A DNA stretch of 64,000 nt from Entomortierella parvispora E1425 (lineage: Eukaryota; Fungi; Mortierellomycota): positions 2,170,001-2,234,000 of the forward strand of contig BQFW01000002.1 in assembly GCA_020891255.1 (NCBI GenBank), read 5' to 3'. The notes under the pieces are model-generated. The model was not told the DNA's origin and searched no databases. It saw only the letters and a list, made by a program, of their open reading frames with translations. This document shows, piece by piece, positions 8,085 through 64,000 of this stretch; the stretch's first letter is position 1, and each line of letters opens with the position of its first letter. Position numbers and translations under genes: made by a program.

Positions 8085-8521
8085 GTCGCCCCTCTGCTAT
8101 AATACAAGGCTTAATCTCAGTAAAACAAAAGGGAAGATGTGATATGAGAAATCAGCCAGTCGAGCCACACCTCCGACATACTGTTGTACAATGCGTATCA
8201 TGTCTTTTTTTTTTTGTTCTTGGTATCAAGCTTAATACAAGAAAAACATTTCGTGGTCTTGTACTTCACCAGTTGCTCCTTGGCATTAGCGGAGAAAGAG
8301 AGGCCACACACTCTTTCTTTTAATTTGTTCTTTTGCACTATATTTTTTGGCAGGTGGATGTTGTTGCAGCAGCGACTTTGCCGAGCGTACAGTATGTTCT
8401 TTGCAGTCGCTCTCGTCGTGTTTGACTACGATGAAGTACTGTAGACAAGAAGTGTCGTTTATCTTAGGGCCTGATACTAACTTGTATAGGCATGGATCGC
8501 GTGATGTCGCTGTAATACTGC

Positions 8522-8572
8522 TGTGGTGTAGTAGATGTGGAGTCCCGGTCCACATCCATCGGAGTAGAGATA
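8522..8572 (+). repeat. 5' stub of a family-D LTR, cut by a Crypton end
   Basis: TGTGGTGTAGTAGATGTGGAGTCCCGGTCCACATCCATCGGAGTAGAGATA matches the start of the D LTRs (rc of 33492-33542 and 40976-41026). Confidence 0.9.
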
Positions 8573-9491
8573 TAGACTACGAGTTCAAATTTTAGCCGTG
8601 TCCAGGCTCATGTCCGACCATGGACACGGTGTCCATCACGTGACCTGTCCCTGGAGGATTAGCGAGATGAATGCCATATTGGGACCCCATCGTCCTGTCG
8701 GAAAATAAAGAATAGCGATGTGAATTTGCCATTGGTTGCCGTCGTCTCGGGTTTTTTTGCCTGCACGATCTCCCTGCAATTTTTATCTTGGGTCTCGCGA
8801 GCTTTTTGAAAAGGGTTTATTCATGGGACCATGTGCGACCCCTTGAGGCAAACATTTTTTTTTTTTCTTTTTCTTCTTCAAACCCTGCTCCCCCCTCTCC
8901 CCTGCTTTCTCTCCTCCCAACTGCACTGTCCTCCCTTTCCCCCCCCCCCCCCCCCTAAGGATGTCTGAGATCACTTTCAACAATCAACAAGGTCAAGCTC
9001 ACCAGGTCGATGGCTTGGATGGTGGCATCTTGAATCACCATGCTAGCCAAACGCGCGATAGTCGAGTCCATTCCACGCATTCTGGTCGTCATGCAGGCAC
9101 CTCTGCACTCGACAGACGTACACATTCTGGCCGCCACAGTGGTCGCCAAGTACAAATAGGCCCGGTACTCCAAGCAACCATGCATCACACTCACTGACCT
9201 GTGGGTGGATGTGACCATGAGCGCGCGCGGCGCGCGCGCGTGTGTGTGTCTATGTGTATGCAGGGTTTTTTTTGCATTCTTCCGCTTGGTATTATCTCTG
9301 CCTCATCTCATTCTCGTTTCACTTTCGCTCGCGTCGTGTTTGAAGGTGTTTAACTATTGATCCATAAACTCCTCAAACACTCAAAAGCTTTGGAGAAGAG
9401 ATCAGTTTATTGTCTTACAAAATCTACAACTGCTTCTGTTTTTTCCTCAAGTCCTCTCGAATGAAGTTGATCGTTTTATCTTTGTAAGTGA
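8570..9491 (-). mobile_element. 3' end of a Crypton-like element (left copy, inverted), truncated by LTR element B
   Basis: Reverse complement aligns, with substitutions and indels, to 61663-62607, including the last codons of the GCR1_C-like ORF and the same terminus ...GAACTCGTAGTCTATAT. Confidence 0.85.
8961..9197 (+). CDS. 78-aa ORF antisense to the Crypton recombinase gene, containing THSGRHAGTS; expression unproven
   Basis: ATG...TGA open here and in the second copy (61952-62191), which differs by substitutions and an in-frame 3-bp indel. Confidence 0.4.
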   Translation: MSEITFNNQQGQAHQVDGLDGGILNHHASQTRDSRVHSTHSGRHAGTSALDRRTHSGRHSGRQVQIGPVLQATMHHTH

Positions 9492-9953
9492 TGAAAAGTA
9501 TATGGCACACGGAGTCAGTGAGAATAAGAGAGGGATCTCTGTTTTATTGAACCGGTCAGGATATTATCCTGACCGTTGCCTCCGTGACTGTGCCTTGCTG
9601 CCAGCAGCATCATTTGCCGCTGCGCCACCAAATTATGCGACAGAACTTCCCCTCCCATGGAGAGCGAAGCGCGGGTTGACACTACTGGTCAGTGAGAGGG
9701 TAAAAAATAAAACCTCTATGAAAATGTTATGGTTGAGGAAAAGTGAAAAACCTCTTGTCTTTGAGGAAAACCATGTGGTAAAAAACCTCTTTGCCTGTTA
9801 GGTCTTCTTTGCGTAGTAGCGTTTTAGTTCCTCGTTCTCGTTTGGTATCTCTTCGATCTTTGATCCTGTGGTCGCTTATTTTCTTTGAGAAGTTGCCAAT
9901 ATTCTCTGATACATTGTTTTTCAATAAAGTTTTCTTCGGGTTCCCAAGTGTAG

Positions 9954-10749
9954 TCATCTTTGGAGTAGCCAGCCCATTTTGCTTTGTATTCCCACTCCCC
10001 CCTTTCGAGAAGGATGAGGACGGTGGTCGAGAATGTACTCGATCTCGAATATGGGCAGCGTATTTAAATCCTCGAGTACGAGTTTGAGCTGGGATGGGGC
10101 ATAGTTGCGACTGAGCGACTCGCCTGTACCATCTCTGAGCTCATAAGATCCACCGGTCGTGCGGCGCACTACTGTGTACGGGCCTTCATACCGTGGCGTA
10201 AGTTTATTACCGCGGATGGGATCAAGTGTCATGACTTTTGCGCCATCAGGGAATTCATTATGCAGAACTGTGGCATTGAATCGGGCGATCATTTTCTTTT
10301 GAGTCTCTTCTGATTTCTTGTCAATCGCTGGAAAGACAATTTCAGTCATGTATGCGAGACGATCACAGAGCTGCTTGTGGGTCATGACGTTCTTGGTAGA
10401 TTTGGAGTAATTTTGGAAGCCATTGGCCTTGCGAGCGAAGAAGAGAGAGAACGGTGATGAATTATGGAGAGCAACGATTCTTGTATTCATTGCAAGCTGT
10501 GCCATGGGTACATGAAGGTCCCAAGTATCTTGTTTCTGATGATGTTCTTTCTTGAGGATGTCGACTGCGACTTTGACATGTCGTTCAGCAACGCCGTTTC
10601 CTCGAGGGTGATACGGCGTAAGTAGCCAGTGGTCAACGTTAAATTCAGAGGTCATTGCAAGCATGACTTGGTTCACCAATTCCCTGCCGTTATCGGATTG
10701 TAAAACGCGAGGAAAGCCAACGGTACAAAATATATCAAACAGGGCTTTA
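9954..10749 (-). pseudogene. Family B integrase C-terminal half plus frameshifted chromodomain
   Basis: LQSDNGRE, TPYHPRGNGVAER, PRYEGPY, FEIEYILDHR; joins 15817+ once A1 and one CTTTA copy are removed. Confidence 0.88.
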
Positions 10750-10860
10750 TGTAACAGGAATACGGTGACATCACGCGATGTGTACCTACAAAAGCTAGAA
10801 ACTTGCAATATAATAAAACGCACTTCTTGTCTCCACTCCACCCTCGATACTCCTATTGCA

Positions 10861-10892
10861 TGGTAGCAAAGGTTTTCGATCCACTGACCTCA
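10861..10892 (+). promoter_or_regulatory. Primer-binding site of A1, tRNA-iMet type
   Basis: TGGTAGCAAAGG directly after the LTR, followed by TTTCGATCCA resembling the complement of the iMet T-loop; same in A2 (rc, ending 58947). Confidence 0.7.
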
Positions 10893-10978
10893 CTGACCCA
10901 CTGACCCTCCGACACACTCACACCCTGGACCCCCTCGTATCCCTCTTCGATCAACTCTCCCTCGACAATTCACCCAAC

Positions 10979-11899
10979 ATGGACTCCGCGACACCGTCAT
11001 TCAAATTCCCTCATCCAACACCGTTCAACGGCAAGCGCGACGGATTCTCTGTTCTCGGTTTTCTGAAACGCATGACCTTTTTCTTCGATGGCGCTGGAAT
11101 TGCCGAATCTCGCAAGGTCGGGGTTACCCTTGCCTTTGCCGGCGATGAGGTTATCGGCTGGTGGGCACTCTTAAACAAGCCATCCGACACCTCATTCCCG
11201 GATTTCAGCGAGCTCCTTGCCGCCGAGTTCAGCCCTGCGAAGTTTAAGGAGCACATTCTCGCCCTCACAATGCAAATGAAAATGACACTGCCACTGAACA
11301 TCTCCAACGTCATGGCCTATATTACCAAAGCCCGTGAATACCACCTACTCCTCCAGTCTTACTACGCCGACAACGCAGTTCTCAACGATACTATCCGTAC
11401 TGCCTTTCTCAGTGGTGCACCTACTCAGCTTCGCCAGATGCTGGAAGTGGCCATTGTTAATGCAGGCAACGACACCATAGATCTGCCCAGACTCTTTAAG
11501 GCCGCGGAGGAGTTCGGTCGTATCTTCCACACTGAAGACCCATCACTCGGTGCCAAAGCACTGGCTGCCTCGGGATCCTCTGCTGGTATCACCGACCCCA
11601 ACGCAATGGAAGTGGACAATATTCATATCCAACTCAACAATATCCACAAGCAACTCGGCACCCTTCACCGCTCCTTACAGAACCGCCCCACCAACGGTAC
11701 TAACAACCCTTCTCGAGATCGCCCCGCACCCCTGACCGCCGCCGACCGAGAGTACCTTGTACGTAACGGTGGCTGCTTCCGCTGCCGCGAATTGGGTCAC
11801 ATCAGTCCCAATTGCCCTAAGTACGGCAACGGCAGCCGAGGAATTAATCAAGTAACCGCGGGTGAATCCCCTGATTCGGGAAAAGCCTCCGGCAACTAG
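10979..11899 (+). CDS. A1 Gag with CCHC zinc knuckle
   Basis: Retrotransposon gag-like N-terminus, PMEVD-like NAMEVD, CFRCRELGHISPNC; -1 slippery site G GGA AAA at 11878-11884. Confidence 0.9.
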   Translation: MDSATPSFKFPHPTPFNGKRDGFSVLGFLKRMTFFFDGAGIAESRKVGVTLAFAGDEVIGWWALLNKPSDTSFPDFSELLAAEFSPAKFKEHILALTMQMKMTLPLNISNVMAYITKAREYHLLLQSYYADNAVLNDTIRTAFLSGAPTQLRQMLEVAIVNAGNDTIDLPRLFKAAEEFGRIFHTEDPSLGAKALAASGSSAGITDPNAMEVDNIHIQLNNIHKQLGTLHRSLQNRPTNGTNNPSRDRPAPLTAADREYLVRNGGCFRCRELGHISPNCPKYGNGSRGINQVTAGESPDSGKASGN

Positions 11900-14800
11900 G
11901 GTCGGTCCGGACCCCAGTTGTCGAAACTGTAGCCAACAACCCTGAGCTAAGTACCTCAAATAAAACTTCACTTGATTCTACACCTCAGAAACATGACTCC
12001 AATCATGACAAGCGAACTCACATCCACGATGCTCTGGTTGTTCTATCGGACCGAAACCAAAACCAAACCAAAAAACCTGTTGCCTCGCCCGCTCCAGTTG
12101 CCCTGTCCGCTCCTCTACCTAGATCCTCCGATACAGATGAACCGGACCCTCTCGCTGTACCGCCGGCACCTAGTGTACCTCTGTCCAAAAAGTCAGTTGA
12201 AGAAGTTGAAGCGTCGTGCGATTCGCCTACACGAATTCACTGTCCAAAAGGCAGAGAGCCAACTGCTCACTTTCATCGGTTCTGTCAATGGCCACGCTGC
12301 CAGAATCCTGATTGATGGTGGTGCAGAAGGTAATATTATCAGTTCGTCTTTTCAAAAGCGACACCAGCTCCTCCGCACTGAATGCTTGCCCATCCCCATC
12401 CTCCTCCCCAATGGCTCTTCCTCCCTCACATCACACACCGTCCCCATCACCCTCAACCGCAGCGACTACTCCGATTCGCTCAACCCTATTCTCTATCCTC
12501 TCAACAAATACGACCTCATCCTTGGCAAACCCTGGCTCACCAAAGTTAACCCTTGCATCAATTGGCGCACCAACGATCTTCATTTCACTCACAATGGAAT
12601 CGATGTCAAATGGAGCTGCCGCGGCTTCAAGGCCGATCACATCCAAAGCCGCACCAAAGGACTCCTCCTCACACACATGCACTTTCATTCCATGGCAACC
12701 CTGCCCGGCTCGGAGGTGTTCCTGGCCCTTATTCGCAACACCCCAGAGCCCTCTGAAGAAACTGACCAACCGCGTACAATTCCCGATATGACCCCAGAGG
12801 TGCGGTCCATTGTCATGGAAGAGTTCGCTGATGTCTTTCCGGAGAAACTCCCGGACGGCCTGCCCCCAGACCGTGGTGATGCTATGAAGATCGAGACCGA
12901 CCCGACAGCCGACCCACCCTTCCGCCCTGTCATTAGACTTTCAATCGCCGAGCTTGACGAACTTCGCAAACAACTGGACCAATTGCTAGCAGCAGGTTTT
13001 ATCAAACCCAGTACCTCTCCCTATGGCGCCCCCGTGCTCTTTGTGCGGAAGAAGGACGGCACACTCCGAATGTGCGTCGACTACCGTGGCCTCAACAAGA
13101 TCACCAGGAAGAACAGACACCCGCTGCCCCGTATCGACGAGCTACTTGACCGCTTCCGTGGAGCACGCTATTACTCCAAGTTGGACTTGTTATCCGGTTA
13201 TCATCAGCAGCGTATCTTTGAACCACACACACACAAGACTGCCTTCCGTTGTCGCTATGGTCACTTTGAGTTCAATGTTGTTCCCTTTGGCCTTACTAAC
13301 GCTCCTGCTTCGTTCTCCAATATGATGTTGCGAGTACTCGATCCAGTCTTGGACAAATGGGTTGTCGTGTATCTCGACGATCTGTTGATCTACTCCAAGA
13401 CAAAGAAAGAACACCTGCAGCATCTCCGAAGCGTCCTGGCTCTCCTCCGCAAGAACGGTCTGTACGCGAAATTGAGCAAGTGCTCCTTCATGCAAGACGA
13501 AACTGAATTTTTGGGCCACACCATCACGAAGGACGGGATCAAAACATCGGCCGGGCTCAGCAAAGCCATCAGTGACTGGCCCACCCCCAAGAGCACAAAG
13601 GACGTCCAGCAATTTTTGGGGCTTGCGCAATTTTATCAACAGTACGTATCGGGCTTTGCAGGGATTGCCCTCCCTCTCTCTTCCCTCCTCGCCAACAACA
13701 CTCCCTTCAAATGGACCGACGAACAACAATCTGCATTCCTTCAGCTCAAACGCGCCATCTGCTCCGCCCCCGTCCTCCGCATCTTCGACCCTGATCTCTC
13801 ACCTTTGTCGAAACAGATGCATCCGGTTTCGCCATCGGTGCAGTGCTGCTGCAGACTGACCGGGAAGGGAATACCCATCCCATCGCATTCACTTCCAGGA
13901 AAATGCAGTCAGCTGAGCGGAACTACCCTGTCCATGAGCAGGAACTGTTGGCTGTCATCCATGCGCTCCGCACTTGGCGCTACTACCTCGATGGAACCAA
14001 GTTCAGCGTCCACACCGACCACGCCACCCTCCGCCACTTCCCCCACACAGCCCAAACTCACTCGTCGACAGGCTCGCTGGATGGAGTTGCTTCAGGAATA
14101 CGACTTTGACTTCAAGTACAAGCGAGGAGTTGACAACATCGTCCCAGACGCTCTCTCCCGACGACCGGACTACCGCGAGCCTGACCCTGTTGAGCTATAC
14201 AACCTCAGCGTCTCCCTGTCCCCGGACGTCCGTGACCAGCTTGTCCAGGACTACAACGACGATCCTCGACTTGGACCCATCTACAAGGATTGCCTGGATG
14301 GGAAGGTTGCCAATGGATATTCATTCCAGAACAACCTCCTCTACTTTACCCGACGTGGAGCAACCACCCTGGCCATCCCTCGGCACTCCCCGATCCGCCT
14401 CACTCTCTTGCACGACGCTCACGACTCTGCCACTGCTGGACACTTTGGTTTTCAAAAGACTTACGACAACCTGCGCCGTTTCGTATATTGGCCCCACATC
14501 GCCAAGGATACCCAGCAGTATGTAGCAACCTGCGAGAAGTGTCAAAGGAACAAGGACTCACAGGATCGACCAGCTGGACTCTTGCAACCGCTACCCATTC
14601 CTTCGCAACGTTGGGAGGTAGTCACCATGGACTTCATCGGCCCTCTTCCGCCCACAGCTAGAAATTTTGACGCCATCACAGTGTTTGTCGACAAGCTGAC
14701 CAAGCAAGCTCACTTCGTCCCCAGTACTACCTCTGCCACAGCCGTCGACGTCGCCCACCAGTTTTTTGACAACATCTTTAAGCTGCATGGCACACCAACA

Positions 14801-15695
14801 TCCATCATCTCGGACCGCGACACTCGATTCACTAGTAGATTCTGGCAAGAGTTGCACAGGCTAATGGATGTCAAACTTGCACTGTCAACCGCCTACCACC
14901 CACAGACGGATGGGCAGACAGAGGTTATGAACAAGACGCTGAAGACTATGTTGAGAGCGTTTATTGACAACAAGCAGTCTAACTGGGACCAGCTCCTTCC
15001 GTCACTGGAATTCGCCTATAACAACGCTGTCAATGCATCCACGGGATACTCGCCGTTCTTCCTCAACTCTGGCCAGCACCCTCGTCTCCCCCACCGCTCT
15101 CCTCGGTAAACCCAGCAGCTCAGTCCCCACTGTCGATACCTTCCTGACTGAGCAGGCGACCACCCTTGCCCTGGCCCAGGATGCTCTGCAGCGTGCTCAG
15201 GATCATCAGGAGCAACAGGCAAACAAGCGACGACGGGATCACAAGTACAAGGTTGGCGATAAGGTCCTGCTGCGTGCCACCAATATCACCATCCCTGCCG
15301 ACAGTATCAGACCAGCCGATAAACTTCGACCTCAATTCCTTGGCCCGTTCACACTTTTGGAGCAACACTCACCTGTCACCTTCCGCGTCGAGCTGCCACC
15401 ATTCTACAAAATCCATGACGTCTTCCACGTTGATACCTTTCGACCCTATTTGCCGTCCCCGGAGTCACTCGGCATTCGAGCTCCTGCCCCCGTGGATCCC
15501 ACTGTAATTGACGGCGAAGAGGAGTATGAAGTGGACGAAATTTTAAAGTACCGCTTCTACCGCAGACAACACCAGTTCCTAGTGTCATTCAAAGGCTACG
15601 GCAGAGAAGCTGACGAATGGCTCCCAGTAAGCAACTTGGACAACTGCATGGACTTGGTCACAACCTTCAAAGAGCAGCACGGTATCATTTTTTAA
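11878..15695 (+). pseudogene. A1 Pol (PR-RT-RNaseH-INT-chromodomain) with four single-base frameshifts
   Basis: LIDGGAEGN, CVDYRGLN, YLDD, GHFG..CEKC, IISDRD, HPQTDGQTE, YEVDEIL..FLVSFKGY; shifts near 12187-12191, 13796-13800, 14040-14044 and ~15090. Confidence 0.9.
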
Positions 15696-15816
15696 AAGGG
15701 GAAGGTGTAACAGGAATACGGTGACATCACGCGATGTGTACCTACAAAAGCTAGAAACTTGCAATATAATAAAACGCACTTCTTGTCTCCACTCCACCCT
15801 CGATACTCCTATTGCA

Positions 15817-18800
15817 CTTTAGAGACAGTGTTTGCTTGTTTATCAGGGAGCGCTCTTAAGAAGACGAAGCGTGTGCATACGTCGACTACGATAAGAAGGA
15901 TTTCATTGCCTTTCTTTGAGAGTTTGAACGGTCCCGCTAAATCCATAGCCATATGATCTCCTGGCAGGTTTGCGTGGATAGCTTTTAATGGATGATAGCC
16001 TTTGATACTAATATTGTACTTCTGACATTCCGAGCATTTCTTAACCCAATTCAAGCAGTCATCTGTGAGATGGGGCCATGTGTATTGTTCCGCATGTATA
16101 GACCGGACCATTGCATTCGCTCCAAGGTGGCCGAGGGCGTGGGTTTTGTACAATATATCGTCCTGCTTCTTTTTGCCATGAACGACTTCTAACATTGTGT
16201 CTTTGTTTTGCATGATGTGCATGTAAGCGTTGACTATGTGCCCATGGTTGGAGTCGTAGCGAGTCTGGATGGAGGCTGGGAACAGTCTAGACAAGTGATC
16301 TGGCAACACATTCATCACTCCAGGTCGGTATTCGACCGTAAAGTCATAACTCAGGATTGTTTCATGCCAGCCAGTGAGCATGGAGTTTAACTCTTTCTGC
16401 GAGTGAATGAACGTAAGTGCTCGATGATCTGTATACAGTGTAAAGTGTCTTCCCCAGAGGTAATAGTGGAATTTCGTGAGTGCAAACACGATTCCTAGCA
16501 ATTCTTTTTGTGTGGCTGAATACCGTCGTTCTCTGTCTTGTAGAGAGCGTGCCATGAAGGATATGTATCTGTTCTCCCATTTTTTCTTGGATTCATTCCT
16601 GACTTTCTGGTAAAGGACCGATGCAATGCCTACGTTGGATGCGTCAGTGGCGACGTAGAACGGCAGACCGAAGTCAGGGAAGTGCAAGATTGGTGCATGG
16701 CTTAGCAGTTTCTTGAATGTATTGAAAGCATCGAGTTCGTCTGCATTGAGTTTGAACACTTTTGTTTCATGCCTCAACTTATCCAATGGCGCTGCCAACG
16801 TACTGAACAGCGGGATGAATTCTCGAAAGAAATTAAATGTGCCCATGTAGGACTGAATCTGATTGCCTGTGGTTGGTGGAACCCACTGGTCGATATTGGC
16901 TAGCTTGGTAGGATCTACCCGTTTGCCAGCCAAGTCAATGACAAAGCCGAGAAGTACAATCTGTGTTGCGAAGAAGTGTGATTTTTCTGGGTTGATAATA
17001 AGCTTTGCTTCTGTTAGGCGTTCGATTACACACTTGACGTGCGCTGCATGCTCTTCCTTGGTCTTGGAGAAAATAACGATGTCGTCAATGAACACCAGGA
17101 CAAAGGGCAAGTCCCCCAAGATGCGTGTCATTCCGCGTTGGAATATGCTTGACAGTGGCTTAAGTCCGAATGGAGCTCGTCGGAACATATATTGAGTTCC
17201 TCGGTGCATGAATGCAGTGAGTGGTTGATGTCCTGCTTCGATAGGTAACCGGTGATATGCTTGTGTCAAATCGAGCGTTGTATAAATCATGTGGCCACCT
17301 ATCTGTTGTAAGATGTCCGATATTAATGGTACTGGATGGTTGTCATCCTTTAATAATTTGTTCAGAGGACGTGGGTCTAGGCAAACCCGCCATTTCGTTT
17401 TATTGCCGAGGAGATCTTTCTTGGCCGCGAGAGTTAGCGTGTTATTGTGCCGATTGTTGGCCGGAGCAAGTGTGATAACTCCATCTTTAAGCCATTTGTC
17501 AACTTGTTCGTCGAAAATATGCTGTTGCTGTTCAGCAAACGTCCTTGGTCTGCGATAAATTGTCGTGCCATCAGGAACATCCAAGAACACGTGCATCTCT
17601 GGTAGAGTGCAGTAGCTGTCTAGCGGTATCTGTGCGTTGTCCTTTATCGAGTCTTGGATTTCACTCATGAATTGTGCTTTGAGTTTCTTGAACTTGTCAG
17701 TCAGTTCTTCGATTGGTGTTTCCAATGGTAACACGGATGGCTTTTCATGGTGTTGGCGTTGGCAGAGTCTGTGCGTTTGCTCGTCCGTCTGCAATGCCTC
17801 CGATTGAGAACCCTAGTTTGTTAAATAGGTCCATGCCAATGACAAATGGGTATTGTAGGTCAAACAGTTCAAATGAGGCGAGAAGCGAATGTTCATTGCA
17901 TTCTACTTCTATATGTTCTGTTACTCCTGTTCTTGCTACATGCATTTTCTTGTGCCCGAGGAAGATGTTTCCCCGTGCTTTGCTGACCTCAATTTTCAGA
18001 GCTTCTACTAATGACTTGTCTATGAATGACTTCGTGGCTCCAGAATCAATTAGTGCTTCAAATTGAAGGCCTTCGAAGTAGATCGGTACTACAAGTCTCT
18101 TGTCATTGTCGTTCTGGTCACCCATTTCATTGTATATAAGTGTTTCAAACATGTGTGATTGCTCATCGTTTATTGTCATGTGCTCCTGTGGTATGTCTTG
18201 TGACATTCTACTTTCCCTCCCCGCATGTGCCAGGACTGAATCTGTGGAGTGAACAGACTCTATGAATTCTTTATCTGACACTGGCGACATGTCTCTAGTC
18301 TGAGAGGAGTAGGACGCAAGAGTGAGTGCGTTGAAGTTGATATCAAGATCGTGGTATGTTTGCCACACATTTTTACGAGAGCGTAGTATATGAAGAGGGT
18401 CCTTACTGTAATTGCGCTCACGAGAGTTGTGGCTATCCCTGTTGTCTCTGCGCTGGCGATTGTCAGCTTGATATGGCCCGAAGCGGCTTGATCCGCGGTG
18501 GGACCGGTCTTGTCGATCGTCTGAGCTGTGTGAGCTACGCTCCGAGTGTTCATTGCGTCGTCGTTCGTCGTTCTGGCGCGCACGGCAGGCGTCCTTCTTA
18601 TGGCCTAGCTTGTTGCAGTAGTCGCAGCTGATATGGTCCTTGGAAACGTGGTTGCCGTTCTTGTTACATTTATCACACCACATCTGCTTCGACTCAGCCT
18701 TGGCGGCGTGAGAGTTGGTGGTGGGCATTACTGGAGCGCTAAAGTTTTCGCGAGCTCCAGCTGGTCCTGTTAGCTTGCCCAGTGCGATACAAAAATCAGC

Positions 18801-20785: not shown

Positions 20786-21036
20786 ATGTCCTTATTAGTC
20801 TCCTTTCAGTTTCGTTCCTGCTTATATCGTGATCCTGTTGCTCATTCTCCTCCTCCTGTCTATCCAGTTCATTCTCTCGAAATTGTATCTGGTCATATAG
20901 CAGTGCTGTGCTTGATCCTTGTGGCACAGAGAGCAAAGTCCCTATCATATGTAGGCAGCGAGCTTTGTTCGTTATTATTCTTTTCACCTCCAGCCTTTGC
21001 TGACGTTAGATTATACTTACTTTAGACAACATCACA
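20786..21036 (+). repeat. 3' portion of a family-D LTR with a 12-bp internal deletion
   Basis: Matches 23474-23736; ends ACATCACA and is followed by ACGG. Confidence 0.88.
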
Positions 21037-39846: not shown

Positions 39847-39931
39847 GTTGGGATCCAATGAAGACTGGTTTCAAATTGATATCGGAAAGAAGAAGAGTTT
39901 CTCTTTAATCTCAGACGGGAGTGCTTGTAAT

Positions 39932-44372: not shown

Positions 44373-44442
44373 AGTAAGGGACAAAACTGTCTCAATGTTT
44401 TCAAATTTTTTCTATTACGCGTGAGTGCTCCATCATAAACGC

Positions 44443-44951: not shown

Positions 44952-44954
44952 CCA

Positions 44955-45065
44955 TGCAATAGGAGTATCGAGGGTGGAGTGGAGACAAGAAGTGAGTTTT
45001 ATTATATTGCAAGTTTCTAGCTTTTGTAGGTACACATCGCGTGATGTCACCGTATTCCTGTTACA
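44955..45065 (-). repeat. Family-A LTR
   Basis: Matches 53994-54104; abuts the truncated Crypton gene. Confidence 0.93.
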
Positions 45066-52534: not shown

Positions 52535-53646
52535 GGTCAGATGGAGAACTTCTATGCTCCCAAGAACCCCACTGTAGGGGCGTTTTACATGGCGCACTTC
52601 AACAAGAGAGATGAGCCTTACAAGATCGAACGCGACCTTGTCACCCCCGACCTCGAGCTTCAACGACTGATTTTCCCCTGGATTGAAAACGTCATGGATG
52701 AAGCCGATGGTAGGCCATGGGCGGAGGTGTGTGCAGATGAGATGCGAGGTGTCAACCCATCCGAGTCCACACTGAAGGATGTCTTTTGGAAGCCAATTGC
52801 TCTTGACGAGCTATCAAAGACCACGGCATCTTTGACCAGTAGCGTCCTGATCGATCGAATTGCATTCTTAAAGCTCATGGTCCGGATGAGGCGAGTAATC
52901 CTACAGGATGCGGTGATGATGTTGACTTACTGTATACCGACTCCACTGGTGAAACTCTCAACAACCGGCTTTTATCCTCGGTGGAGCTGAAACACATTTT
53001 CTCTGGCCCTCTCTTCCGCAAGCTCCAGACTGATCTCCTAGCCGCCATTGCTCTTCACCAGGAGCAGGTAAAGATCATCAATGACAGTGTGCAATTGACC
53101 ACAGAGAAAGTCAGTGCCTTGAACACACTTGGGTCTGTGATGGTGAACAGTGGGATATTTTGGGCTCTCACTTACAATATGACTATCGAGACAAGAAGAA
53201 GGATCTTTATGTTCTGCCCTCGCACTCCTTTGATAAGGGAGTGCGAGGGTGGCTTGCTACTAAACTAGGTTACTAAAATAAACATCCCTATTAATACACT
53301 TCAAGGCCCACGATATGCCACAAACAGCACCGCCCAGATGCAAACTCAGATGCATTCAAATTGGGACTTGGTGACGGAGACACGGGAAGAAATCAAAGGA
53401 CTCAAGGAAACATTCACGGAAAAGTTTGTCCGACAGGAGGAACGACAGAATCAACAGGATGAGTGGCAAGTGCAGCACTGGCTCCATCTTCAACATTCAG
53501 TTCCGCCTCCAGCTGCAGTCAGACGACCCTTTGTTGTCAGTGCTGGTGTTTCCCAACCTCAACCACCGTAGGCTGTGCACCAACAACCACGCCAGCTACC
53601 ACCTCCTCGGTACGAAACACCACCACCGCTGCAACAAATGAGATGG

Positions 53647-53673: not shown

Positions 53674-53737
53674 CCACCACCACCACAACCACTATCACCA
53701 CAGTCAAACGCCTCAATCTCCTCTTCATCACTGCCGC

Positions 53738-56700
53738 TGTGGTGTAGTAGATACAGATCACACATTTGTAGAAGTCAGTTTAGATACCCTTAAAAGATTG
53801 CGTTAATATAATTTCGTGTTCAGAGCAGTAATTGCTCTGGGTCGCTTCCTTCCCTACTTTTTCGTTTGCCTTTGTTTGATCGTTACAGAACACATACACA
53901 TCCCCCCCCACTTCCTGCCCGATATCCCCTTTGCAGCAGCAGCAAGATCGACGCCTTAATTCCGATTGCTGAGACTATTAGTAGCTAGTCTAATGCAATA
54001 GGAGTATCGAGGGTGGAGTGGAGACAAGAAGTGAGTTTTATTATATTGCAAGTTTCTAGCTTTTGTAGGTACACATCGCGTGATGTCACCGTATTCCTGT
54101 TACACCTTCCCCTTTTAAAAAATGATACCGTGCTGCTCTTTGAAGGTTGTGACCAAGTCCATGCAGTTGTCCAAGTTGCTTACTGGGAGCCATTCGTCAG
54201 CTTCTCTGCCGTAGCCTTTGAATGACACTAGGAACTGGTGTTGTCTGCGGTAGAAGCGGTACTTTAAAATTTCGTCCACTTCATACTCCTCTTCGCCGTC
54301 AATTACAGTGGGATCCACGGGGGCAGGAGCTCGAATGCCGAGTGACTCCGGGGACGGCAAATAGGGTCGAAAGGTATCAACGTGGAAGACGTCATGGATT
54401 TTGTAGAATGGTGGCAGCTCGACGCGGAAGGTGACAGGTGAGTGTTGCTCCAAAAGTGTGAACGGGCCAAGGAATTGAGGTCGAAGTTTATCGGCTGGTC
54501 TGATACTGTCGGCAGGGATGGTGATATTGGTGGCACGCAGCAGGACCTTATCGCCAACCTTGTACTTGTGATCCCGTCGTCGCTTGTTTGCCTGTTGCTC
54601 CTGATGATCCTGAGCACGCTGCAGAGCATCCTGGGCCAGGGCAAGGGTGGTCGCCTGCTCAGTCAGGAAGGTATCGACAGTGGGGACTGAGCTGCTGGGT
54701 TTACCGAGGAGAGCGGTGGGGAGACGAGGGTGCTGGCCAGAGTTGAGGAAGAACGGCGAGTATCCCGTGGATGCATTGACAGCGTTGTTATAGGCGAATT
54801 CCAGTGACGGAAGGAGCTGGTCCCAGTTAGACTGCTTGTTGTCAATAAACGCTCTCAACATAGTCTTCAGCGTCTTGTTCATAACCTCTGTCTGCCCATC
54901 CGTCTGTGGGTGGTAGGCGGTTGACAGTGCAAGTTTGACATCCATTAGCCTGTGCAACTCTTGCCAGAATCTACTAGTGAATCGAGTGTCGCGGTCCGAG
55001 ATGATGGATGTTGGTGTGCCATGCAGCTTAAAGATGTTGTCAAAAAACTGGTGGGCGACGTCGACGGCTGTGGCAGAGGTAGTACTGGGGACGAAGTGAG
55101 CTTGCTTGGTCAGCTTGTCGACAAACACTGTGATGGCGTCAAAATTTCTAGCTGTGGGCGGAAGAGGGCCGATGAAGTCCATGGTGACTACCTCCCAACG
55201 TTGCGAAGGAATGGGTAGCGGTTGCAAGAGTCCAGCTGGTCGATCCTGTGAGTCCTTGTTCCTTTGACACTTCTCGCAGGTTGCTACATACTGCTGGGTA
55301 TCCTTGGCGATGTGGGGCCAATATACGAAACGGCGCAGGTTGTCGTAAGTCTTTTGAAAACCAAAGTGTCCAGCAGTGGCAGAGTCGTGAGCGTCGTGCA
55401 AGAGAGTGAGGCGGATCGGGGAGTGCCGAGGGATGGCCAGGGTGGTTGCTCCACGTCGGGTAAAGTAGAGGAGGTTGTTCTGGAATGAATATCCATTGGC
55501 AACCTTCCCATCCAGGCAATCCTTGTAGATGGGTCCAAGTCGAGGATCGTCGTTGTAGTCCTGGACAAGCTGGTCACGGACGTCCGGGGACAGGGAGACG
55601 CTGAGGTTGTATAGCTCAACAGGGTCAGGCTCGCGGTAGTCCGGTCGTCGGGAGAGAGCGTCTGGGACGATGTTGTCAACTCCTCGCTTGTACTTGAAGT
55701 CAAAGTCGTATTCCTGAAGCAACTCCATCCAGCGAGCCTGTCGACGAGTGAGTTTGGGCTGTGTGGGGAAGTGGCGGAGGGTGGCGTGGTCGGTGTGGAC
55801 GCTGAACTTGGTTCCATCGAGGTAGTAGCGCCAAGTGCGGAGCGCATGGATGACAGCCAACAGTTCCTGCTCATGGACAGGGTAGTTCCGCTCAGCTGAC
55901 TGCATTTTCCTGGAAGTGAATGCGATGGGATGGGTATTCCCTTCCCGGTCAGTCTGCAGCAGCACTGCACCGATGGCGAAACCGGATGCATCTGTTTCGA
56001 CAAAGGTGAGAGATCAGGGTCGAAGATGCGGAGGACGGGGGCGGAGCAGATGGCGCGTTTGAGCTGAAGGAATGCAGATTGTTGTTCGTCGGTCCATTTG
56101 AAGGGAGTGTTGTTGGCGAGGAGGGAAGAGAGAGGGAGGGCAATCCCTGCAAAGCCCGATACGTACTGTTGATAAAATTGCGCAAGCCCCAAAAATTGCT
56201 GGACGTCCTTTGTGCTCTTGGGGGTGGGCCAGTCACTGATGGCTTTGCTGAGCCCGGCCGATGTTTTGATCCCGTCCTTCGTGATGGTGTGGCCCAAAAA
56301 TTCAGTTTCGTCTTGCATGAAGGAGCACTTGCTCAATTTCGCGTACAGACCGTTCTTGCGGAGGAGAGCCAGGACGCTTCGGAGATGCTGCAGGTGTTCT
56401 TTCTTTGTCTTGGAGTAGATCAACAGATCGTCGAGATACACGACAACCCATTTGTCCAAGACTGGATCGAGCACTCGCAACATCATATTGGAGAACGAAG
56501 CAGGAGCGTTAGTAAGGCCAAAGGGAACAACATTGAACTCAAAGTGACCATAGCGACAACGGAAGGCAGTCTTGTGTGTGTGTGGTTCAAAGATACGCTG
56601 CTGATGATAACCGGATAACAAGTCCAACTTGGAGTAATAGCGTGCTCCACGGAAGCGGTCAAGTAGCTCGTCGATACGGGGCAACGGGTGTCTGTTCTTC

Positions 56701-59700
56701 CTGGTGATCTTGTTGAGGCCACGGTAGTCGACGCACATTCGGAGTGTGCCGTCCTTCTTCCGCACAAAGAGCACGGGGGCGCCATAGGGAGAGGTACTGG
56801 GTTTGATAAAACCTGCTGCTAGCAATTGGTCCAGTTGTTTGCGAAGTTCGTCAAGCTCGGCGATTGAAAGTCTAATGACAGGGCGGAAGGGTGGGTCGGC
56901 TGTCGGGTCGGTCTCGATCTTCATAGCATCACCACGGTCTAGGGGCAGGCCGTCCGGGAGTTTCTCCGGAAAGACATCAGCGAACTCTTCCATGACAATG
57001 GACCGCACCTCTGGGGTCATATCGGGAATTGTACGCGGTTGGTCAGTTTCTTCAGAGGGCTCTGGGGTGTTGCGAATAAGGGCCAGGAACACCTCCGAGC
57101 CGGGCAGGGTTGCCATGGAATGAAAGTGCATGTGTGTGAGGAGGAGTCCTTTGGTGCGGCTTTGGATGTGATCGGCCTTGAAGCCGCGGCAGCTCCATTT
57201 GACATCGATTCCATTGTGAGTGAAATGAAGATCGTTGGTGCGCCAATTGATGCAAGGGTTAACTTTGGTGAGCCAGGGTTTGCCAAGGATGAGGTCGTAT
57301 TTGTTGAGAGGATAGAGAATAGGGTTGAGCGAATCGGAGTAGTCGCTGCGGTTGAGGGTGATGGGGACGGTGTGTGATGTGAGGGAGGAAGAGCCATTGG
57401 GGAGGAGGATGGGGATGGGCAAGCATTCAGTGCGGAGGAGCTGGTGTCGCTTTTGAAAAGACGAACTGATAATATTACCTTCTGCACCACCATCAATCAG
57501 GATTCTGGCAGCGTGGCCATTGACAGAACCGATGAAAGTGAGCAGTTGGCTCTCTGCCTTTTGGACAGTGAATTCGTGTAGGCGAATCGCACGACGCTTC
57601 AACTTCTTCAACTGACTTTTTGGACAGAGGTACACTAGGTGCCGGCGGTACAGCGAGAGGGTCCGGTTCATCTGTATCGGAGGATCTAGGTAGAGGAGCG
57701 GACAGGGCAACTGGAGCGGGCGAGGCAACAGGTTTTTTGGTTTGGTTTTGGTTTCGGTCCGATAGAACAACCAGAGCATCGTGGATGTGAGTTCGCTTGT
57801 CATGATTGGAGTCATGTTTCTGAGGTGTAGAATCAAGTGAAGTTTTATTTGAGGTACTTAGCTCAGGGTTGTTGGCTACAGTTTCGACAACTGGGGTCCG
57901 GACCGACCCTAGTTGCCGGAGGCTTTTCCCGAATCAGGGGATTCACCCGCGGTTACTTGATTAATTCCTCGGCTGCCGTTGCCGTACTTAGGGCAATTGG
58001 GACTGATGTGACCCAATTCGCGGCAGCGGAAGCAGCCACCGTTACGTACAAGGTACTCTCGGTCGGCGGCGGTCAGGGGTGCGGGGCGATCTCGAGAAGG
58101 GTTGTTAGTACCGTTGGTGGGGCGGTTCTGTAAGGAGCGGTGAAGGGTGCCGAGTTGCTTATGGATATTGTTGAGTTGGATATGAATATTGTCCACTTCC
58201 ATTGCGTTGGGGTCGGTGATACCAGCAGAGGATCCCGAGGCAGCCAGTGCTTTGGCACCGAGTGATGGGTCTCCAGTGTGGAAGATACGACCGAACTCCT
58301 CCGCGGCCTTGAAGAGTCTGGGCAGATCTATGGTGTCGTTGCCTGCATTAACAATGGCCACTTCCAGCATCTGGCGAAGCTGAGTAGGTGCACCACTGAG
58401 AAAGGCAGTACGGATAGTATCGTTGAGAACTGCGTTGTCGGCGTAGTAAGACTGGAGGAGCAGGTGGTATTCACGGGCTTTGGTAATATAGGCCATGACG
58501 TTGGAGATGTTCAATGGTAGTGTCATTTTCATTTGCATTGTGAGGGCGAGAATGTGCTCCTTAAACTTCGCAGGACTGAACTCGGTGGCAAGGAGCTCGC
58601 TGAAATCCGGGAATGAGGTGTCGGATGGCTTGTTTAAGAGTGCCCACCAGCCGATAACCTCATCGCCGGCAAAGGCAAGGGTAACCCCGACCTTGCGAGG
58701 TTCGGCAATTCCAGCGCCATCGAAGAAAAAGGTCATGCGTTTCAGAAAACCGAGAACAGAGAATCCGTCGCGCTTGCCGTTGAACGGTGTTGGATGAGGG
58801 AATTTGAATGACGGTGTCGCGGGGTCCATGTTGGGTGAATTGTCGAGGGAGAGTTGATCGAAGAGGGATACGAGGGGGTCCAGGGTGTAAGTGTGTCGGA
58901 GGGTCAGTGGGTCAGTGAGGTCAGTGGATCGAAAACCTTTGCTACCATGCAATAGGAGTATCGAGGGTGGAGTGGAGACAAGAAGTGAGTTTTATTATAT
59001 TGCAAGTTTCTAGCTTTTGTAGGTACACATCGCGTGATGTCACCGTATTCCTGTTACATCTAACCTCCTCCCCCCCCCCCCTTTACCTTTGGATATCACA
59101 GACCCTGTTCTGCCGATCAAGCTTGCCTTCGTACAAGTCTTGAGCTTCCACCGGACTGAGATCTTTATTGATACTTGGTTCACACAGTTTAGACAGTGAG
59201 ATCCTGCAACGTCTATCCTCCCCCTCGCAAGCAATCCCCTTTCCCTTGATCACTTGTGACCAGCCCCTCTCTCCTTGAGCTACGACCGATCCCCAACCCA
59301 TTGTAGCAACACCACACCCGAACGAAAATGGTGGAGAACCTGGGCAACCATTGCTGGGTACTGCAATAAGAGGATATAGACAGAGGTCCACTTCACTGTG
59401 TGCACTTTTGTTTATATGGTCCCCGTCCGGCCCTCTTGGACTTTTTCTTTTTTCTTTTTCTTTTTTTTTTTTTTCACTCCTTTGCCCCCCGCGTCTTCTT
59501 TCCGCTTTCGTCCCTATCCCTCTGCTGAGGATAATACTTCCCGGTATTTTCCTCAACAAATCTCGTCTTCATTCGTGTTCATTTGTGTTCATTTGTGGTC
59601 GCATGCACCCGAATTGAGATCTCGGATCTGAATTAATTTCATTTTTTTCTCCATTCGGAACATTTCGGAGCAGTCACACTCTGTTATGAGCTACCTTAAG

Positions 59701-61373
59701 AATGGTACCTTCTTATGTTCGTTCTTCGAGAAGATTCCAGAACCGTCCTTTGTTTTGAAATCCGCTGAGTATTAGCTGAGCCACAGCATTTTCGTCTTTC
59801 ACTGCTGTTTTTCGACCCATTGTCCACCTTGAACACTCGCCTTCTTTCTCCTTCTCTCCTTTCGCGTCATTCCATCCTTTTACAACCTCTTCCAACCGTC
59901 AAGGATGAAGTGCTCAGTCCCTTATTTTGTCTTTGTCGGATACCGATTTTTTTTCCACGACCATTTTTCTCACATGGGCTGAATTAGAGCAAGTAATTCA
60001 ATTAATTGTTTTTTTTTGGCACATGCAGAATTCGACGCACTACCTCCCACGTTATAACCTACTTTGAAACCACGACCTTTCTATGTTCTTTTCTCGTGTG
60101 GATTTCAAAACTGCCCTTCGTTTTGAATTTGGTTGATTATCGAGCGATTTATTGCCCCCCCCTTTTTTTTTTATCGTTCAATACCCGTTATCTTTTATTT
60201 GTTGCCTTTCGCTCGATCTTCTACCTTGTTCTTGCCGCCAGAGTCTCGAGTCCCAAGCCGAATCATGTCTTACCAGTCTTGTTTCCGTCGAGCATTGCGC
60301 CCCTCACCCTTAGCCGTTGAACTTCAACTCAGGATCCCGTTGACAAGTACCGCGGACTAGGCGCGTACGAGAGAAACAATACCGACGATCATTGACCGTT
60401 GATGTACAGGAATCCCTTGGACTGGATCCCGGAACACTGGTGACATCCATCTGGATATGAATAACAAGATCATAATATATCTGATAAGAGTCTCTGGATA
60501 TTGAGATTGTTTATTGGGCCTACCTTATGATCAATGTTATTATAATCTTTCAAGTACAACAAGCAAGGATAAGAATCGCTCCCTCCAGTCGAATAGGCCA
60601 TTCGTCTGGCTCAAGAACATTCTTATTCGAAGTGGCACTCAATGGATCCCGAATTGAGTCCAGTCTTCGCGCTCGCACGTAGTAATGACTGCCCTTCAGT
60701 CGTTATTTACTTTGTAGTTGGCCGCCACTACCGTTCCTTTATTTGCTTCTGTTCTACTATATGTTTTGGTCTCCTTATGTCGACTTTGGGGATCTTAGCT
60801 CTTGGTATTAGCAACTCACTTGGCACTCGCCTTGAATAGCTCGTATGAGGCAGCTGGGATCGGTGTGGTGTAGTAGATACAGATCACACATTTGTAGAAG
60901 TCAGTTTAGATACCCTTAAAAGATTGCGTTAATATAATTTCGTGTTCAGAGCAGTAATTGCTCTGGGTCGCTTCTCCTTCCCTACTTTTTCGTTTGCCTT
61001 TTGTTTGATCGTTACAGAACACATACACATCCCCCCCCACTTCCTGCCCGATATCCCCTTTGCAGCAGCAGCAAGATCGACGCCTTAATTCCGATTGCTG
61101 AGACTATTAGTAGCTAGTCTAACCTCCTCCCCCCCCCCTTTACCTTTGGATATCACAGACCCTGTTCTGCCGATCAAGCTTGCCTTCGTACAAGTCTTGA
61201 GCTTCCACCGGACTGAGATCTTTATTGATACTTGGTTCACACAGTTTAGACAGTGAGATCCTGCAACGTCTATCCTCCCCCTCGCAAGCAATCCCCTTTC
61301 CCTTGATCACTTGTGACCAGCCCCTCTCTCCTTGAGCTACGACCGATCCCCAACCCATTGTAGCAACACCACA
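53738..61373 (+). mobile_element. Non-autonomous two-LTR family-C element (LTRs 53738-59316, split by A2, and 60864-61373; ~1.55-kb non-coding core); 4-bp TSD CCGC
   Basis: CCGC at 53734-53737 and 61374-61377; removal rejoins the Crypton frame SLP|PPPPFTQ; PBS at 59329-59346; no convincing core ORF. Confidence 0.9.
53994..59058 (-). mobile_element. Full-length chromovirus A2; LTRs 53994-54104 and 58948-59058; 5-bp TSD TCTAA; gag 57909-58829; pol frameshifted twice
   Basis: TCTAA at 53989-53993 and 59059-59063; near-identical to A1. Confidence 0.96.
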
Positions 61374-61951
61374 CCGCCACCGCCACCATTTACTCAAAAC
61401 TTGACTCACTCGCCTCTTAATTCTTCTGATCTCTCCACTAAAGGATATCTAATGCTTCCCGATAACAAAAATCTGACCCTTCGTATTCTCTGGACCGAGT
61501 ATCATGGCCCAATTGCAGAAGCAAAGAAGAATGACCCAGCTTATCCTTACACTCAAGCGCGCAAAAAGGCTCTGCAGAGGCGAACTCAGCTTGTAGACAA
61601 CATCGAAGCCATGGCAAAGAAAAATGAAGTTCCTGTCGAGTCGATTATTGCAACACTGGGGGTCACTTACAAAGACAAAACGATCAACTTTATTCGAGAG
61701 GACTTGAGGAAAAAACAGAAGCAGCTGCAGATTTTGTAGGACAATAAACTGATCTCATCTCCAAAGCTTTTGAGTGTTTGATGAATTTATGGGTCAACAG
61801 TTAAACACCTTCAAACACGACGCGAGCGAAGGTGAAACGAGGATGAGATGAGGCTGAGATAACACCAGGAGGAAGAATGTAAAAAAGACTCCTCCATACA
61901 CACAACACACATACACAGGCGCGCGCGCTTGTGGTCGCATCCACCCATAGG

Positions 61952-62191
61952 TCAGTGAGTGTGATGGATGGTTGCTTGGAGTACCGGGCCTATTTGTACT
62001 GGGGGACGACCACTATGGCGGCCAGAATGTGTACATCTGTCGAGTGCAGAGGTGCCTGCATGACGTCCAAAATGCGTGGAATGGACTCGACTATCGCGCG
62101 TTTGGCCAGCATGGTGATTCAAGACGCCACCATCCAAGCCATCGACCTGGTGAGCTTGACCTTGTTGTTTGTTGAAAGTGATCTCAGACAT
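61952..62191 (-). CDS. 79-aa antisense ORF in the Crypton 3' end (THFGRHAGTS); second copy of 8961-9197
   Basis: Open ATG-TGA frame conserved between the two copies. Confidence 0.4.
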   Translation of the reverse strand: MSEITFNKQQGQAHQVDGLDGGVLNHHAGQTRDSRVHSTHFGRHAGTSALDRCTHSGRHSGRPPVQIGPVLQATIHHTH

Positions 62192-62699
62192 CCTTGGGGG
62201 AAGAGAGGACAGTGCAGTTGGGAAGAGAGAAAGCAGGGGAGCGGGGCTTCAAGAAAAAAAAAAAAAAAAAAAAGGTGTTTGCCCCCAAGGGTCGGGTCGC
62301 ACCTGCTGGTCCCCATGAATACAGTAAACCCTTTCAAAAAACCAGACAATCGCAATCGCCATCCTTCCAAGACCCAAGATAAAAATGACAGGGAGATCGT
62401 GCAGGCAAAAAAAACCCGAGACGACAGCAACCAATGGCAAATTCACATCGCTAGTTTCTTTTTTCCGACAGGACAATGGGGCCTCAATATGGAATTCATC
62501 TCGCTAATCCTCCAGGGACCGGTCACGTGATGGACACCCGTGGACACCATCGGACATGGTCGGACGTGAGCCTGGACACGGCTAAAATTTGAACTCGTAG
62601 TCTATATTGTATATGTAAAGTGACAAAAAGGTAACAGACTTTGATAGAGAAAGAAAGAGATACTACAGTGGCCCAGCTCATAGCTCTGATCATAAAAAA

Positions 62700-63386
62700 T
62701 TAAAATAGTCAAGAATAATAAAAATATCACATGACTTTTTTTATTAGGCGTTGATTGGACGCTCTGACCATCCGTCCCCCAGGAACACAAACAGAACATG
62801 GCACGCGGCGGTATGTCTTTCGAAGGCAAACTCAACACTGCTTTTTGATTGAGGTAGACTTTACAAAAAATCCCGATTCACTCTTCCTGTGCTTTTCGTT
62901 TGGCGATTGGATACACGCGAGATTAACGGATAAGAGAGCATCAATGACACGATTTGTGTACTTCGCTTGGGTTGACGAAGCAAGGCCATCGATGACAAGC
63001 TCGGTGAAGGGAGAAGAACCGCCCCAGGGTCTGCTAAGCTTGATCAGGGCGATCGTAACTTGCCAAGCTGGATCGAGGGTTTTGCGGACCGAGTATTCTC
63101 TGAAGAGGTCATTTTTCTCAAGCATCTCCACAAGAGCTTGAAATGCAGTCTTGGTTGTTTGAAACGTGTTCTTGAATTCCTGCTCGGTCAAGTTTCCAAA
63201 TTTTAGAATGAAGAAATGATCGTCCTCCTCTCTGGGAACCGGATCATTCATATAACGGGAGAAGACAGTAAGCAAGAATTTCTCTGACAATTCCTCTACT
63301 CTGTCCACGCAGTCGTCTTCTTCAGCTAGAAGGATGTCGGTTTGAAGCTGACAGAGCCGTCCTTTGCGGGCAGTATCGAAGACCAT
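62700..63386 (-). pseudogene. PIF/Harbinger (HARBI1-like) transposase N-terminal remnant
   Basis: EFKNTFQTTKTAFQALV..L, WQVTIALIKL, KYTNRVIDALLSV..I.SP resemble the Harbinger nuclease N-terminal pattern; degenerates around the first catalytic Asp. Confidence 0.65.
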
Positions 63387-63628
63387 CGTCCAGGGGATGT
63401 TTGTGGTGAAAGAAGGGATCAGGGCTGTATGTCTCTTTAAGAATTGGTTTTTGGGGGTTCAGGGCGTGGGATTTCACTGCAGGAACGAAAAGAGATTTCT
63501 CTTTCTTTCATGCTGTGGTTTGTGCAAGGACATGGCAAAGTATGGCACCTTGGAAAAACAATTGCATGGATCCCTCCTGTGTCCAAGGGGCAATCTTTGC
63601 CAAAAGCCGCATTTCTTTTCTCACCCGC

Positions 63629-64000
63629 TGTGATGTTGTCTAAAGTAAGTATAGTCTAACGTCAGCAAAGGCTGGAGATGAAAATGATAACGAAAAGAAT
63701 AATAACGAACAAAGCTCGCTGCTTACATATGATAGGGACTTTGCTCTCTGTACCACAAGGATCAAGCACAGCACTGCTATATGATCAGATACAATCTCGA
63801 GAGAATGAACTGGATAGACAGGAGGAGGAGAATGAGCAACAGGATCACGATATAAGCAGGAACGAAACTGAAAGGAGACTAATAAGGACATACCAATGAG
63901 CTAAGCACGTCCTAATGGTAACCAAACAGGAGAATAAACAACTACGGAGGCGAACACTAGGTACTATACTAACTAATAACAACAACAAGGGAGGATTGAA
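63629..64000 (-). repeat. Family-D LTR running off the window end; left flank CCGC
   Basis: Matches 32479-32850. Confidence 0.93.

Follow-up and report, generated by a model that had tools for sequence, protein, structure and literature searches.

Which feature of a target site do two fungal retrotransposon families recognize when they cut DNA at CpG, and does the same choice carry them into the transposon-rich chromatin where they reside? This question is raised by a 64,000-bp stretch of the genome of Entomortierella parvispora (hereafter the window; C2:2170001-2234000 of an assembly of 38.9 Mb in 20 contigs, labelled C1, C2 and so on), which from ~8.5 kb onward is a nest of long terminal repeat (LTR) retrotransposons. 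The families under study are two Gypsy families, D and C; feature coordinates are window positions unless a contig is prefixed. A first-pass annotation of the window had proposed that D and C integrate at CpG and leave 4-bp target-site duplications (TSDs) of the form NCGN, and that CpG, possibly methylated, serves as a route into chromatin rich in transposable elements (TEs). The NCGN rule holds genome-wide, with a central CG at 91 of 114 sites against a CpG background of 4.5%, while the methylation signal and the route into chromatin are not borne out.

Central CpG in D and C target sites

Three LTR termini were searched genome-wide with near-exact terminus patterns, which yielded 192 D/C LTR ends, and the flanks were taken from 100 junction stretches, each of 66-122 bp, in addition to 30 loci surrounding D LTRs. 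Since the flank on the polypurine tract (PPT) side itself reads TCGG, 28 internal ends at junctions with the primer-binding site (PBS) or PPT were removed. This left 164 LTR-host junctions, 156 of them with unique flanks, and counting each insertion once gave 114 independent target sites. Background dinucleotide frequencies were taken from 164 kb of the same TE clusters.

When D and C make their 4-bp staggered cut, they choose sites with CpG exactly in the middle. A central CG was found at 128 of the 156 unique-flank junctions (82%), the others reading TG (15), CA (11), TA (1) and GC (1). At the level of independent sites, CG occupies the centre of 91 (80%; binomial p = 1e-99), followed by TG at 14, CA at 7, and TA and GC at one each, and CpG accounts for 4.5% of background dinucleotides. 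Both families behave in the same manner (central CG at 56 of 70 D sites and 34 of 43 C sites), and at every other dinucleotide position of the 20-nt flanks the frequency of CG is only 0-9%. The genome-wide target logo against background CpG that the first-pass annotation had suggested as a check was run, and it places the enrichment of CG at ~18-fold. The TSD length is likewise consistent: host sequence borders both ends of 60 solo LTRs or complete elements, 44 of these have a perfect 4-bp TSD, and in none does the match reach a fifth base. Among the 16 pairs that do not match, six are a single base apart. Paralogous copies of the target repeat that lack the insertion are present for 26 of the 44 TSD pairs and contain the tetramer a single time.

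The non-CG tetramers had been explained as deaminated CpG. Deamination after insertion is ruled out as the source of TG and CA by matched TSDs and TG-bearing empty sites: five TSD pairs share TG or CA on both sides (CTGG twice, ATGG, CCAC and GTGG), and the paralogous empty sites of two TG pairs (CTGG and GTGG) likewise read TG. No pair among the 60 has CG on one side and TG or CA on the other, and none of the 16 non-matching pairs differs in this way. The TG/CA tetramers are real, less-favoured targets and not decayed CpGs.

All 16 junction tetramers reported for the window were found where the first-pass annotation had placed them, and its four TSD pairs are exact. CCGG (32475-32478 and 41027-41030) flanks the complete D element at 32479-41026, and a paralogous empty site of this element at 55945-55948 carries CCGG once between identical flanks. 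ACGT (22694/23737) stands on both sides of a D solo LTR on the minus strand (22698-23736; 22694-23740 with its TSDs), the paralogous empty site of which lies at C13:2023049. GCGT (29710/30223) stands on both sides of a 509-bp C solo LTR on the plus strand (29714-30222; 29710-30226 with its TSDs), and empty sites were found in four other copies of its target repeat. The fourth pair, CCGC (53734/61374), flanks the C element described below.

Five further junctions had been described as unpaired. Their tetramers read as reported, but the CCGC at 63625 is actually paired: it precedes a plus-strand D solo LTR that starts at 63629 (63625-64000 with its flank in the window; LTR at C2:2233629-2234667) and ends 667 bp past the window, where CCGC is repeated. 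Two of the other junctions belong to D, namely an LTR fragment on the minus strand (20786-21040) with host flank ACGG (21037-21040) and a truncated LTR on the plus strand (from 21515; 21511-22532) with host flank GCGG (21511-21514). The remaining two belong to C. A shortened LTR of 480 bp on the plus strand (27912-28391; 27908-28395 with flanks) lies between ACGT and ATGC, which are unlike and form no TSD pair, and an LTR on the minus strand (44443-44951; 44439-44955 with flanks) has ACGC on one side. On its other side, CCA runs into an LTR end of the 5,075-bp Gypsy family (hereafter the 5-kb family). Since the sequence enters this LTR terminus after three bases, the CCAT at 44952 is no clean host tetramer, contrary to its earlier listing. 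A terminal D LTR fragment on the plus strand (from 8522; 8518-8569) has the host flank CTGC.

The CpG-centred choice is specific to D and C. Two copies of the 5-kb family in the window serve as controls, one at 10750-15816 on the plus strand (10745-15821 with its TSD CTTTA) and one at 53994-59058 on the minus strand, nested in a C LTR (53989-59063 with its TSD TCTAA). A third control is a Gypsy element with a chromodomain, as detected by Pfam, at 45870-52534 on the minus strand (45865-52539 with its TSD GGTCA). All three TSDs are of 5 bp, as had been noted for these neighbouring families, called A and E in the first-pass annotation. Perfect 5-bp TSDs are found in 18 of 20 full copies of the 5-kb family; CG occurs in 4 of those 18, at variable position, and thus without a bias.

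Reading of the central CpG

When the 156 unique half-sites are read toward the LTR, the full target site is the palindrome KTR|VCGB|YAM. Outside the TSD, flank position -7 is G or T (102 of 156), position -6, two bases outside the TSD, is most often T (73 of 156), and position -5 is G or A, with T at only 13 of 156. Inside the TSD, T is disfavoured at position -4 (TSD position 0; T at 5 of 156), position -3 is C (C 139 and T 16 of 156), position -2 is G (G 143 and A 12 of 156), and A is disfavoured at position -1 (TSD position +3; A at 4 of 156). A hot spot was observed on three contigs (C4:1237471, C9:296351 and C13:2001258), where two D solo LTRs and one of C occupy an identical GCGT in copies of a single repeated target. 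The hot-spot site is a perfect TG|GCGT|CA match; in the window (30223-30240), the C solo LTR uses another GCGT 9 bp upstream.

A closely similar target is known from retroviruses. The target consensus of prototype foamy virus (PFV), KWK|VYRB|MWM, has a sharp bend at the central pyrimidine-purine (YR) step and was extended to viruses of the murine leukaemia virus (MLV) type (Serrao et al., PMC4422553). Four retroviruses with 4-bp TSDs, namely PFV, Moloney MLV (MoMLV), porcine endogenous retrovirus (PERV) and xenotropic MLV-related virus (XMRV), disfavour T at position 0 and A at +3, prefer T at -2 and A at +5, and have a YR centre (PMC4422553). D and C share each of these features, from TSD length and YR centre to the preferences at 0/+3 and -2/+5, together with the 4-bp stagger and a palindrome that extends to 3 bp beyond the TSD. 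Since the flank preferences match, the geometry of D and C is the standard one, narrowed to CG at its central step. The difference lies in the strength of the central preference, because the retroviral one is weak (YR ~63% above random; PMC4422553), whereas 80-88% of D and C sites have CG and TA is avoided. D also differs from the PFV-type retroviruses as a fungal Ty3/Gypsy element that lacks env.

At the second base from the joining point, each strand has C at ~90% of sites, T at ~10% and a purine at <1%. The two half-sites are independent: CG, TG, CA and TA were observed 91, 14, 7 and 1 times against product expectations of 90.3, 13.8, 6.9 and 1.1. This independence suggests that each of the two catalytic protomers reads one C:G pair. 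Among proteins of solved structure, the best sequence relative of the D integrase is the PFV integrase (E = 4e-22), and Ty3 integrase is found at E = 9e-19. The D integrase has a Ser aligned with PFV Ala188 and with Ser119 of human immunodeficiency virus (HIV), a target-contact residue.

From these sequence patterns, CpG-centred targeting is very probably a preference built into the D integrase and not a readout of methylation, and we infer that the base-specific contacts are made by the integrase itself. The D integrase cuts its target with a 4-bp stagger at the palindromic KTR|VCGB|YAM, a generic geometry for this stagger in which the central step is restricted to C-G, and would read it through two identical protomers, each with a bias of about 9:1 toward C rather than T at the second base past its joining point. 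Family C, which follows the same target rule, would insert by the integrase of D. Confinement to one TE cluster per large contig is a separate targeting layer, which the CpG rule does not explain.

Several points weigh against this reading. A host factor may position the D integrase. All target sites lie within TE nests, and the near-exact terminus patterns under-sample old, degraded copies. The contigs of the D-clade relatives (6-8 kb) end within the element, so that no host junction is readable in them. A scan of metagenome contigs with the D/C LTR start gave no match, and one with the LTR start of a soil-metagenome relative, L133, returned internal PPT-LTR junctions only.

It is quite improbable that the integrase reads no base and only needs a flexible central YR step, with CG being incidental. 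Such a step lies at the centre of 112 of the 114 sites, and YR selection is strongest among integrases with 4-bp TSDs (PMC4422553), although the retroviral YR enrichment is only about 63% overall (PMC4422553). Flexibility does not account for the ranking of the steps in D and C, since CG is ~18-fold enriched over background, whereas TG/CA, three times commoner, are enriched only ~1.3-fold. TA is the most deformable dinucleotide step. It was used once in 114 sites against 4.6% in the background, a 5-fold depletion, and the other 12 dinucleotides are depleted about 100-fold. Because TA is avoided, flexibility alone is rejected.

The methylated CpG raised by the first-pass annotation has a very small likelihood. 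The integrase or a partner would read methylated CpG, and 5-methylcytosine (5mC) in TE chromatin would explain both the cut and the confinement. CG is symmetric and typically what maintenance methylation acts on; T, with a 5-methyl group like that of 5mC, is the sole tolerated substitute for C; and D and C are confined to TE nests. However, the sole PF00145 gene of the genome is, judged by its best relatives of solved structure, a homologue of DNMT2, the tRNA-C38 methyltransferase, with matches in three exons at C5:618789-620299, and no DNMT1-, DNMT5-, DIM-2- or RID-type gene was detected in the PF00145 search of the genome. Near-undetectable 5mC is attributed to early-diverging fungi, Mortierellomycota being named, in a 2026 review (PMC13297926). 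Per compared site, transitions among 30 copies of the D LTR occur at a rate of 0.0033 at CpG versus about 0.0066 elsewhere, the 8 C copies being too few to judge, and the observed/expected ratio of CpG is 0.78 in the left 8.5 kb of the window and 0.79 in the TE nest. D pol contains no MBD, SRA or CXXC domain. A genome with DNMT2 only, no CpG hypermutability and no nest-specific CpG depletion together make methylated CpG unlikely as the signal.

A host CpG-binding factor, of the CXXC type or a centromere protein, could dock the intasome and set the cut position, but we give this a very slim chance. Precise positioning by a host factor has a precedent in Ty3, which the Ty3 structure paper reports to integrate within a narrow interval on the upstream side of genes transcribed by Pol III, and D and C require a regional tether anyway. 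Against such docking, the 10-bp motif has dyad symmetry about the centre of the stagger, with flanks as in PFV-type integration into naked DNA (PMC4422553), and its half-sites are independent, as two identical protomers predict. An artefact, in which LTR ends were mis-drawn, one segmental duplication was copied or the CG arose after insertion, has practically no chance: although certain flanks are found on more than one contig, the first and fourth bases of the tetramer vary yet agree between the sides in 44 pairs, the tetramer is present once at empty sites, and the statistics use unique flanks with one count per insertion and leave out the internal PBS/PPT junctions.

The D element, its partner C and their relatives

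D belongs to the Ty3/Gypsy retrotransposons and has been active recently in E. parvispora. The complete autonomous element of 8,548 bp (32479-41026, minus strand), delimited by LTR alignment and Pfam, has LTRs of 1,064 bp each with TGTG...CACA ends (32479-33542 and 39963-41026, minus strand), and this LTR pair matches at 1063 of 1065 aligned positions. Its pol open reading frame (ORF; 33626-38161, minus strand) encodes 1,511 aa with Pfam domains for protease (residues 297-384), reverse transcriptase (671-828) and RNase H (904-1038), followed by an integrase with a zinc finger (1149-1207), a core (1235-1318) and an SH3-like C-terminal domain (about 1439-1476). The gag ORF (38314-39858, minus strand; Pfam) encodes 514 aa and contains a CCHC zinc knuckle. 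D thus has the characters of Ty3/Gypsy elements (Metaviridae): the order protease, reverse transcriptase, RNase H and integrase, a CCHC gag, TG...CA LTRs, a PBS, a purine tract and a short TSD. The internal junctions repeat in 11 copies, with the PBS core TGGTGGA on one side and ...CTGGGATCGG ahead of the LTR on the other.

The D integrase had been described as lacking a chromodomain, and none was found: the C-terminal 192 aa of pol give no PF00385 match even at E = 1. In place of the chromodomain that defines chromoviruses at the integrase C-terminus, D has the SH3-like domain only, with only about 35 residues beyond it. Nor does D carry the third ORF, env, of errantiviruses. There is no room for it: on the coding strand, only 83 nt lie between the end of pol and the 3' LTR, and the 5' LTR is followed by gag after ~100 nt.

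The non-autonomous C element (53738-61373; 53734-61377 with its CCGC TSDs, plus strand) has a 5' LTR split by the nested 5,075-bp element. Its LTRs are 509 bp long, and its internal region of 1.55 kb (59317-60863) is full of stop codons and without a long ORF. The first 15 nt of the LTR are identical in C and D (TGTGGTGTAGTAGAT), and the LTR ends are alike (…ACACCACA versus …ACATCACA, respectively). C also has the PBS core of D 12-13 nt past the LTR, and the same CTGGGATCGG precedes its 3' LTR. Because the LTR end, the PBS and the PPT-adjacent bases are shared, C plausibly uses the D integrase. C is thus plausibly a 2.6-kb non-coding, non-autonomous passenger of D that borrows the integrase of D. 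It resembles non-autonomous elements of the type of terminal-repeat retrotransposons in miniature (TRIM) or large retrotransposon derivatives (LARD), which are mobilized in trans, in having LTRs, PBS and PPT but no ORF; for C, mobilization by D is suggested by the shared signals and the shared target rule.

In both D (39940-39962) and C (59317-59340), the PBS core lies 12-13 nt from the LTR end and does not directly adjoin it, and in L133 (6702-6722) it is 9 nt away from the LTR. Two C copies contain a nested 5-kb element: the copy on C7 (C7:18721-26352) has it in the internal region, the copy of the window (53738-61373) in the 5' LTR. The differing positions indicate that the 5-kb family entered C independently.

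Pol proteins of the D clade (P0001-P0014) were found in soil and sequencing-run assemblies and are 46-83% identical to that of D. The next relatives are <30% identical, and the same limit applies to the D integrase against its nearest relatives outside the clade. In L133, the LTR ends are TGTGGTGTAGTGG…ACAACACCACA, GATCG precedes the LTR, and the primer-binding site is TGGTGGAGA.

The statement that some insect errantiviruses have CG-rich targets agrees with ZAM, a Drosophila errantivirus whose integrase binds and targets CGCGCg (PMC2527525) and whose TSD is 4 bp (PMC3276498). Like D and C, ZAM is an LTR retroelement that leaves a 4-bp TSD and strictly targets a palindrome containing CG, and its specificity is ascribed to the integrase itself. 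However, ZAM uses a 6-bp alternating CG hexamer together with a second binding site 40-56 bp away, whereas in D and C the central dinucleotide alone is fixed and the flanks are weak. A ZAM-like CGCGCG hexamer is absent from the D/C motif, in which the positions around the central CG are degenerate, V and B inside the TSD as well as R and Y outside it. In addition, ZAM is an insect element with env, whereas D has gag and pol only.

A literature search of limited coverage turned up no LTR element of any fungus whose 4-bp TSD is centred on CpG. Compared with PFV-type viruses and ZAM, what sets D and C apart is the combination of a fixed central CG only, an early-diverging fungal host, the lack of env and chromodomain, and residence in centromere-like nests. 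Since integrases are usually weakly selective and D sharpens the PFV-type geometry to a nearly obligatory dinucleotide, D is a good case for learning how integrases gain base specificity.

Nests and candidate centromeres

Each of the 15 large contigs has its D/C ends gathered in a single cluster, about 1-65 kb in size, and the clusters total ~1.4% of the genome. At most three D/C ends lie outside them (C10 at 22 kb and C11 at 679 kb). In Mb, the nests are located at ~0.98-1.04 on C1, 2.18-2.235 on C2 (the window), 1.844-1.848 on C3, 1.23-1.25 on C4, 1.50-1.524 on C5, 0.417-0.47 on C6, 2.08-2.118 on C8, 0.267-0.304 on C9, 0.743-0.796 on C10, 0.368-0.407 on C11, 0.989-1.054 on C12, 1.966-2.024 on C13, 2.012-2.047 on C14 and 0.612-0.632 on C15; the nest of C7 lies at 8-35 kb.

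The chromodomain family is confined as tightly as D and C, while at least 6 of the ~20 full copies of the 5-kb family are on chromosome arms. Nearly all of these full copies are 99-100% identical, and they include, besides the two in the window (10750-15816 and 53994-59058), copies at C12:199288, C7:627214, C2:51938, C1:439405, C1:308754 and C13:2267388. The occurrence of near-identical copies both in nests and on arms suggests a very recent burst of the 5-kb family without regional confinement.

The proposed role of CpG as a route into TE-rich chromatin is not supported, as CpG is about equally frequent outside the nest. A motif of ~4.5 bits is too weak to confine ~190 LTR ends to ~1.4% of the genome, and a separate tether or strong selection is therefore needed. 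Selection alone is weakened as the cause of clustering by the 5-kb family, which is just as young and yet has at least 6 of its ~20 full copies on arms. Local and regional targeting are thus separable in D and C, and the 5-kb control in the same nests follows neither rule, having a 5-bp TSD, no CG bias and arm copies.

It is highly improbable that the CpG choice and the nest confinement are one mechanism, in which the intasome reads a CpG state specific to centromeres or heterochromatin. Such a state would be a cytosine modification made by a non-canonical enzyme, or CpG on a centromeric nucleosome, and the dinucleotide at which it cuts would then be what guides an integrase without a chromodomain to centromeres.

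D and C mark one TE nest per chromosome-sized contig of a Mortierellomycota genome, and we infer from this distribution that the nests are candidate regional centromeres of E. parvispora. The nest of C3 is 10 kb from a contig end and that of C7 is at a contig start, so that C3 and C7 may be one chromosome split at its centromere. No description of Mortierellomycota centromeres was found in a literature search of limited coverage. The Tcn elements of Cryptococcus are centromere-confined LTR retrotransposons. One nest per chromosome, as seen for D and C, is also a feature of the plant CRM elements (PMC3059260) and of a centromeric LTR pair of einkorn wheat (PMC11302176). Centromeric LTR families further resemble D and C in that an autonomous element and a non-autonomous partner share one niche. 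They differ in that CRM elements are chromoviruses (PMC3059260), whereas D has no chromodomain, and no CpG-centred TSD is described for centromeric LTR families in the literature found.

Most of the nest in the window is bounded by an inverted pair of 0.9-kb segments (8570-9491 and 61663-62607), which are 85% identical to each other and are neither D nor C LTRs.

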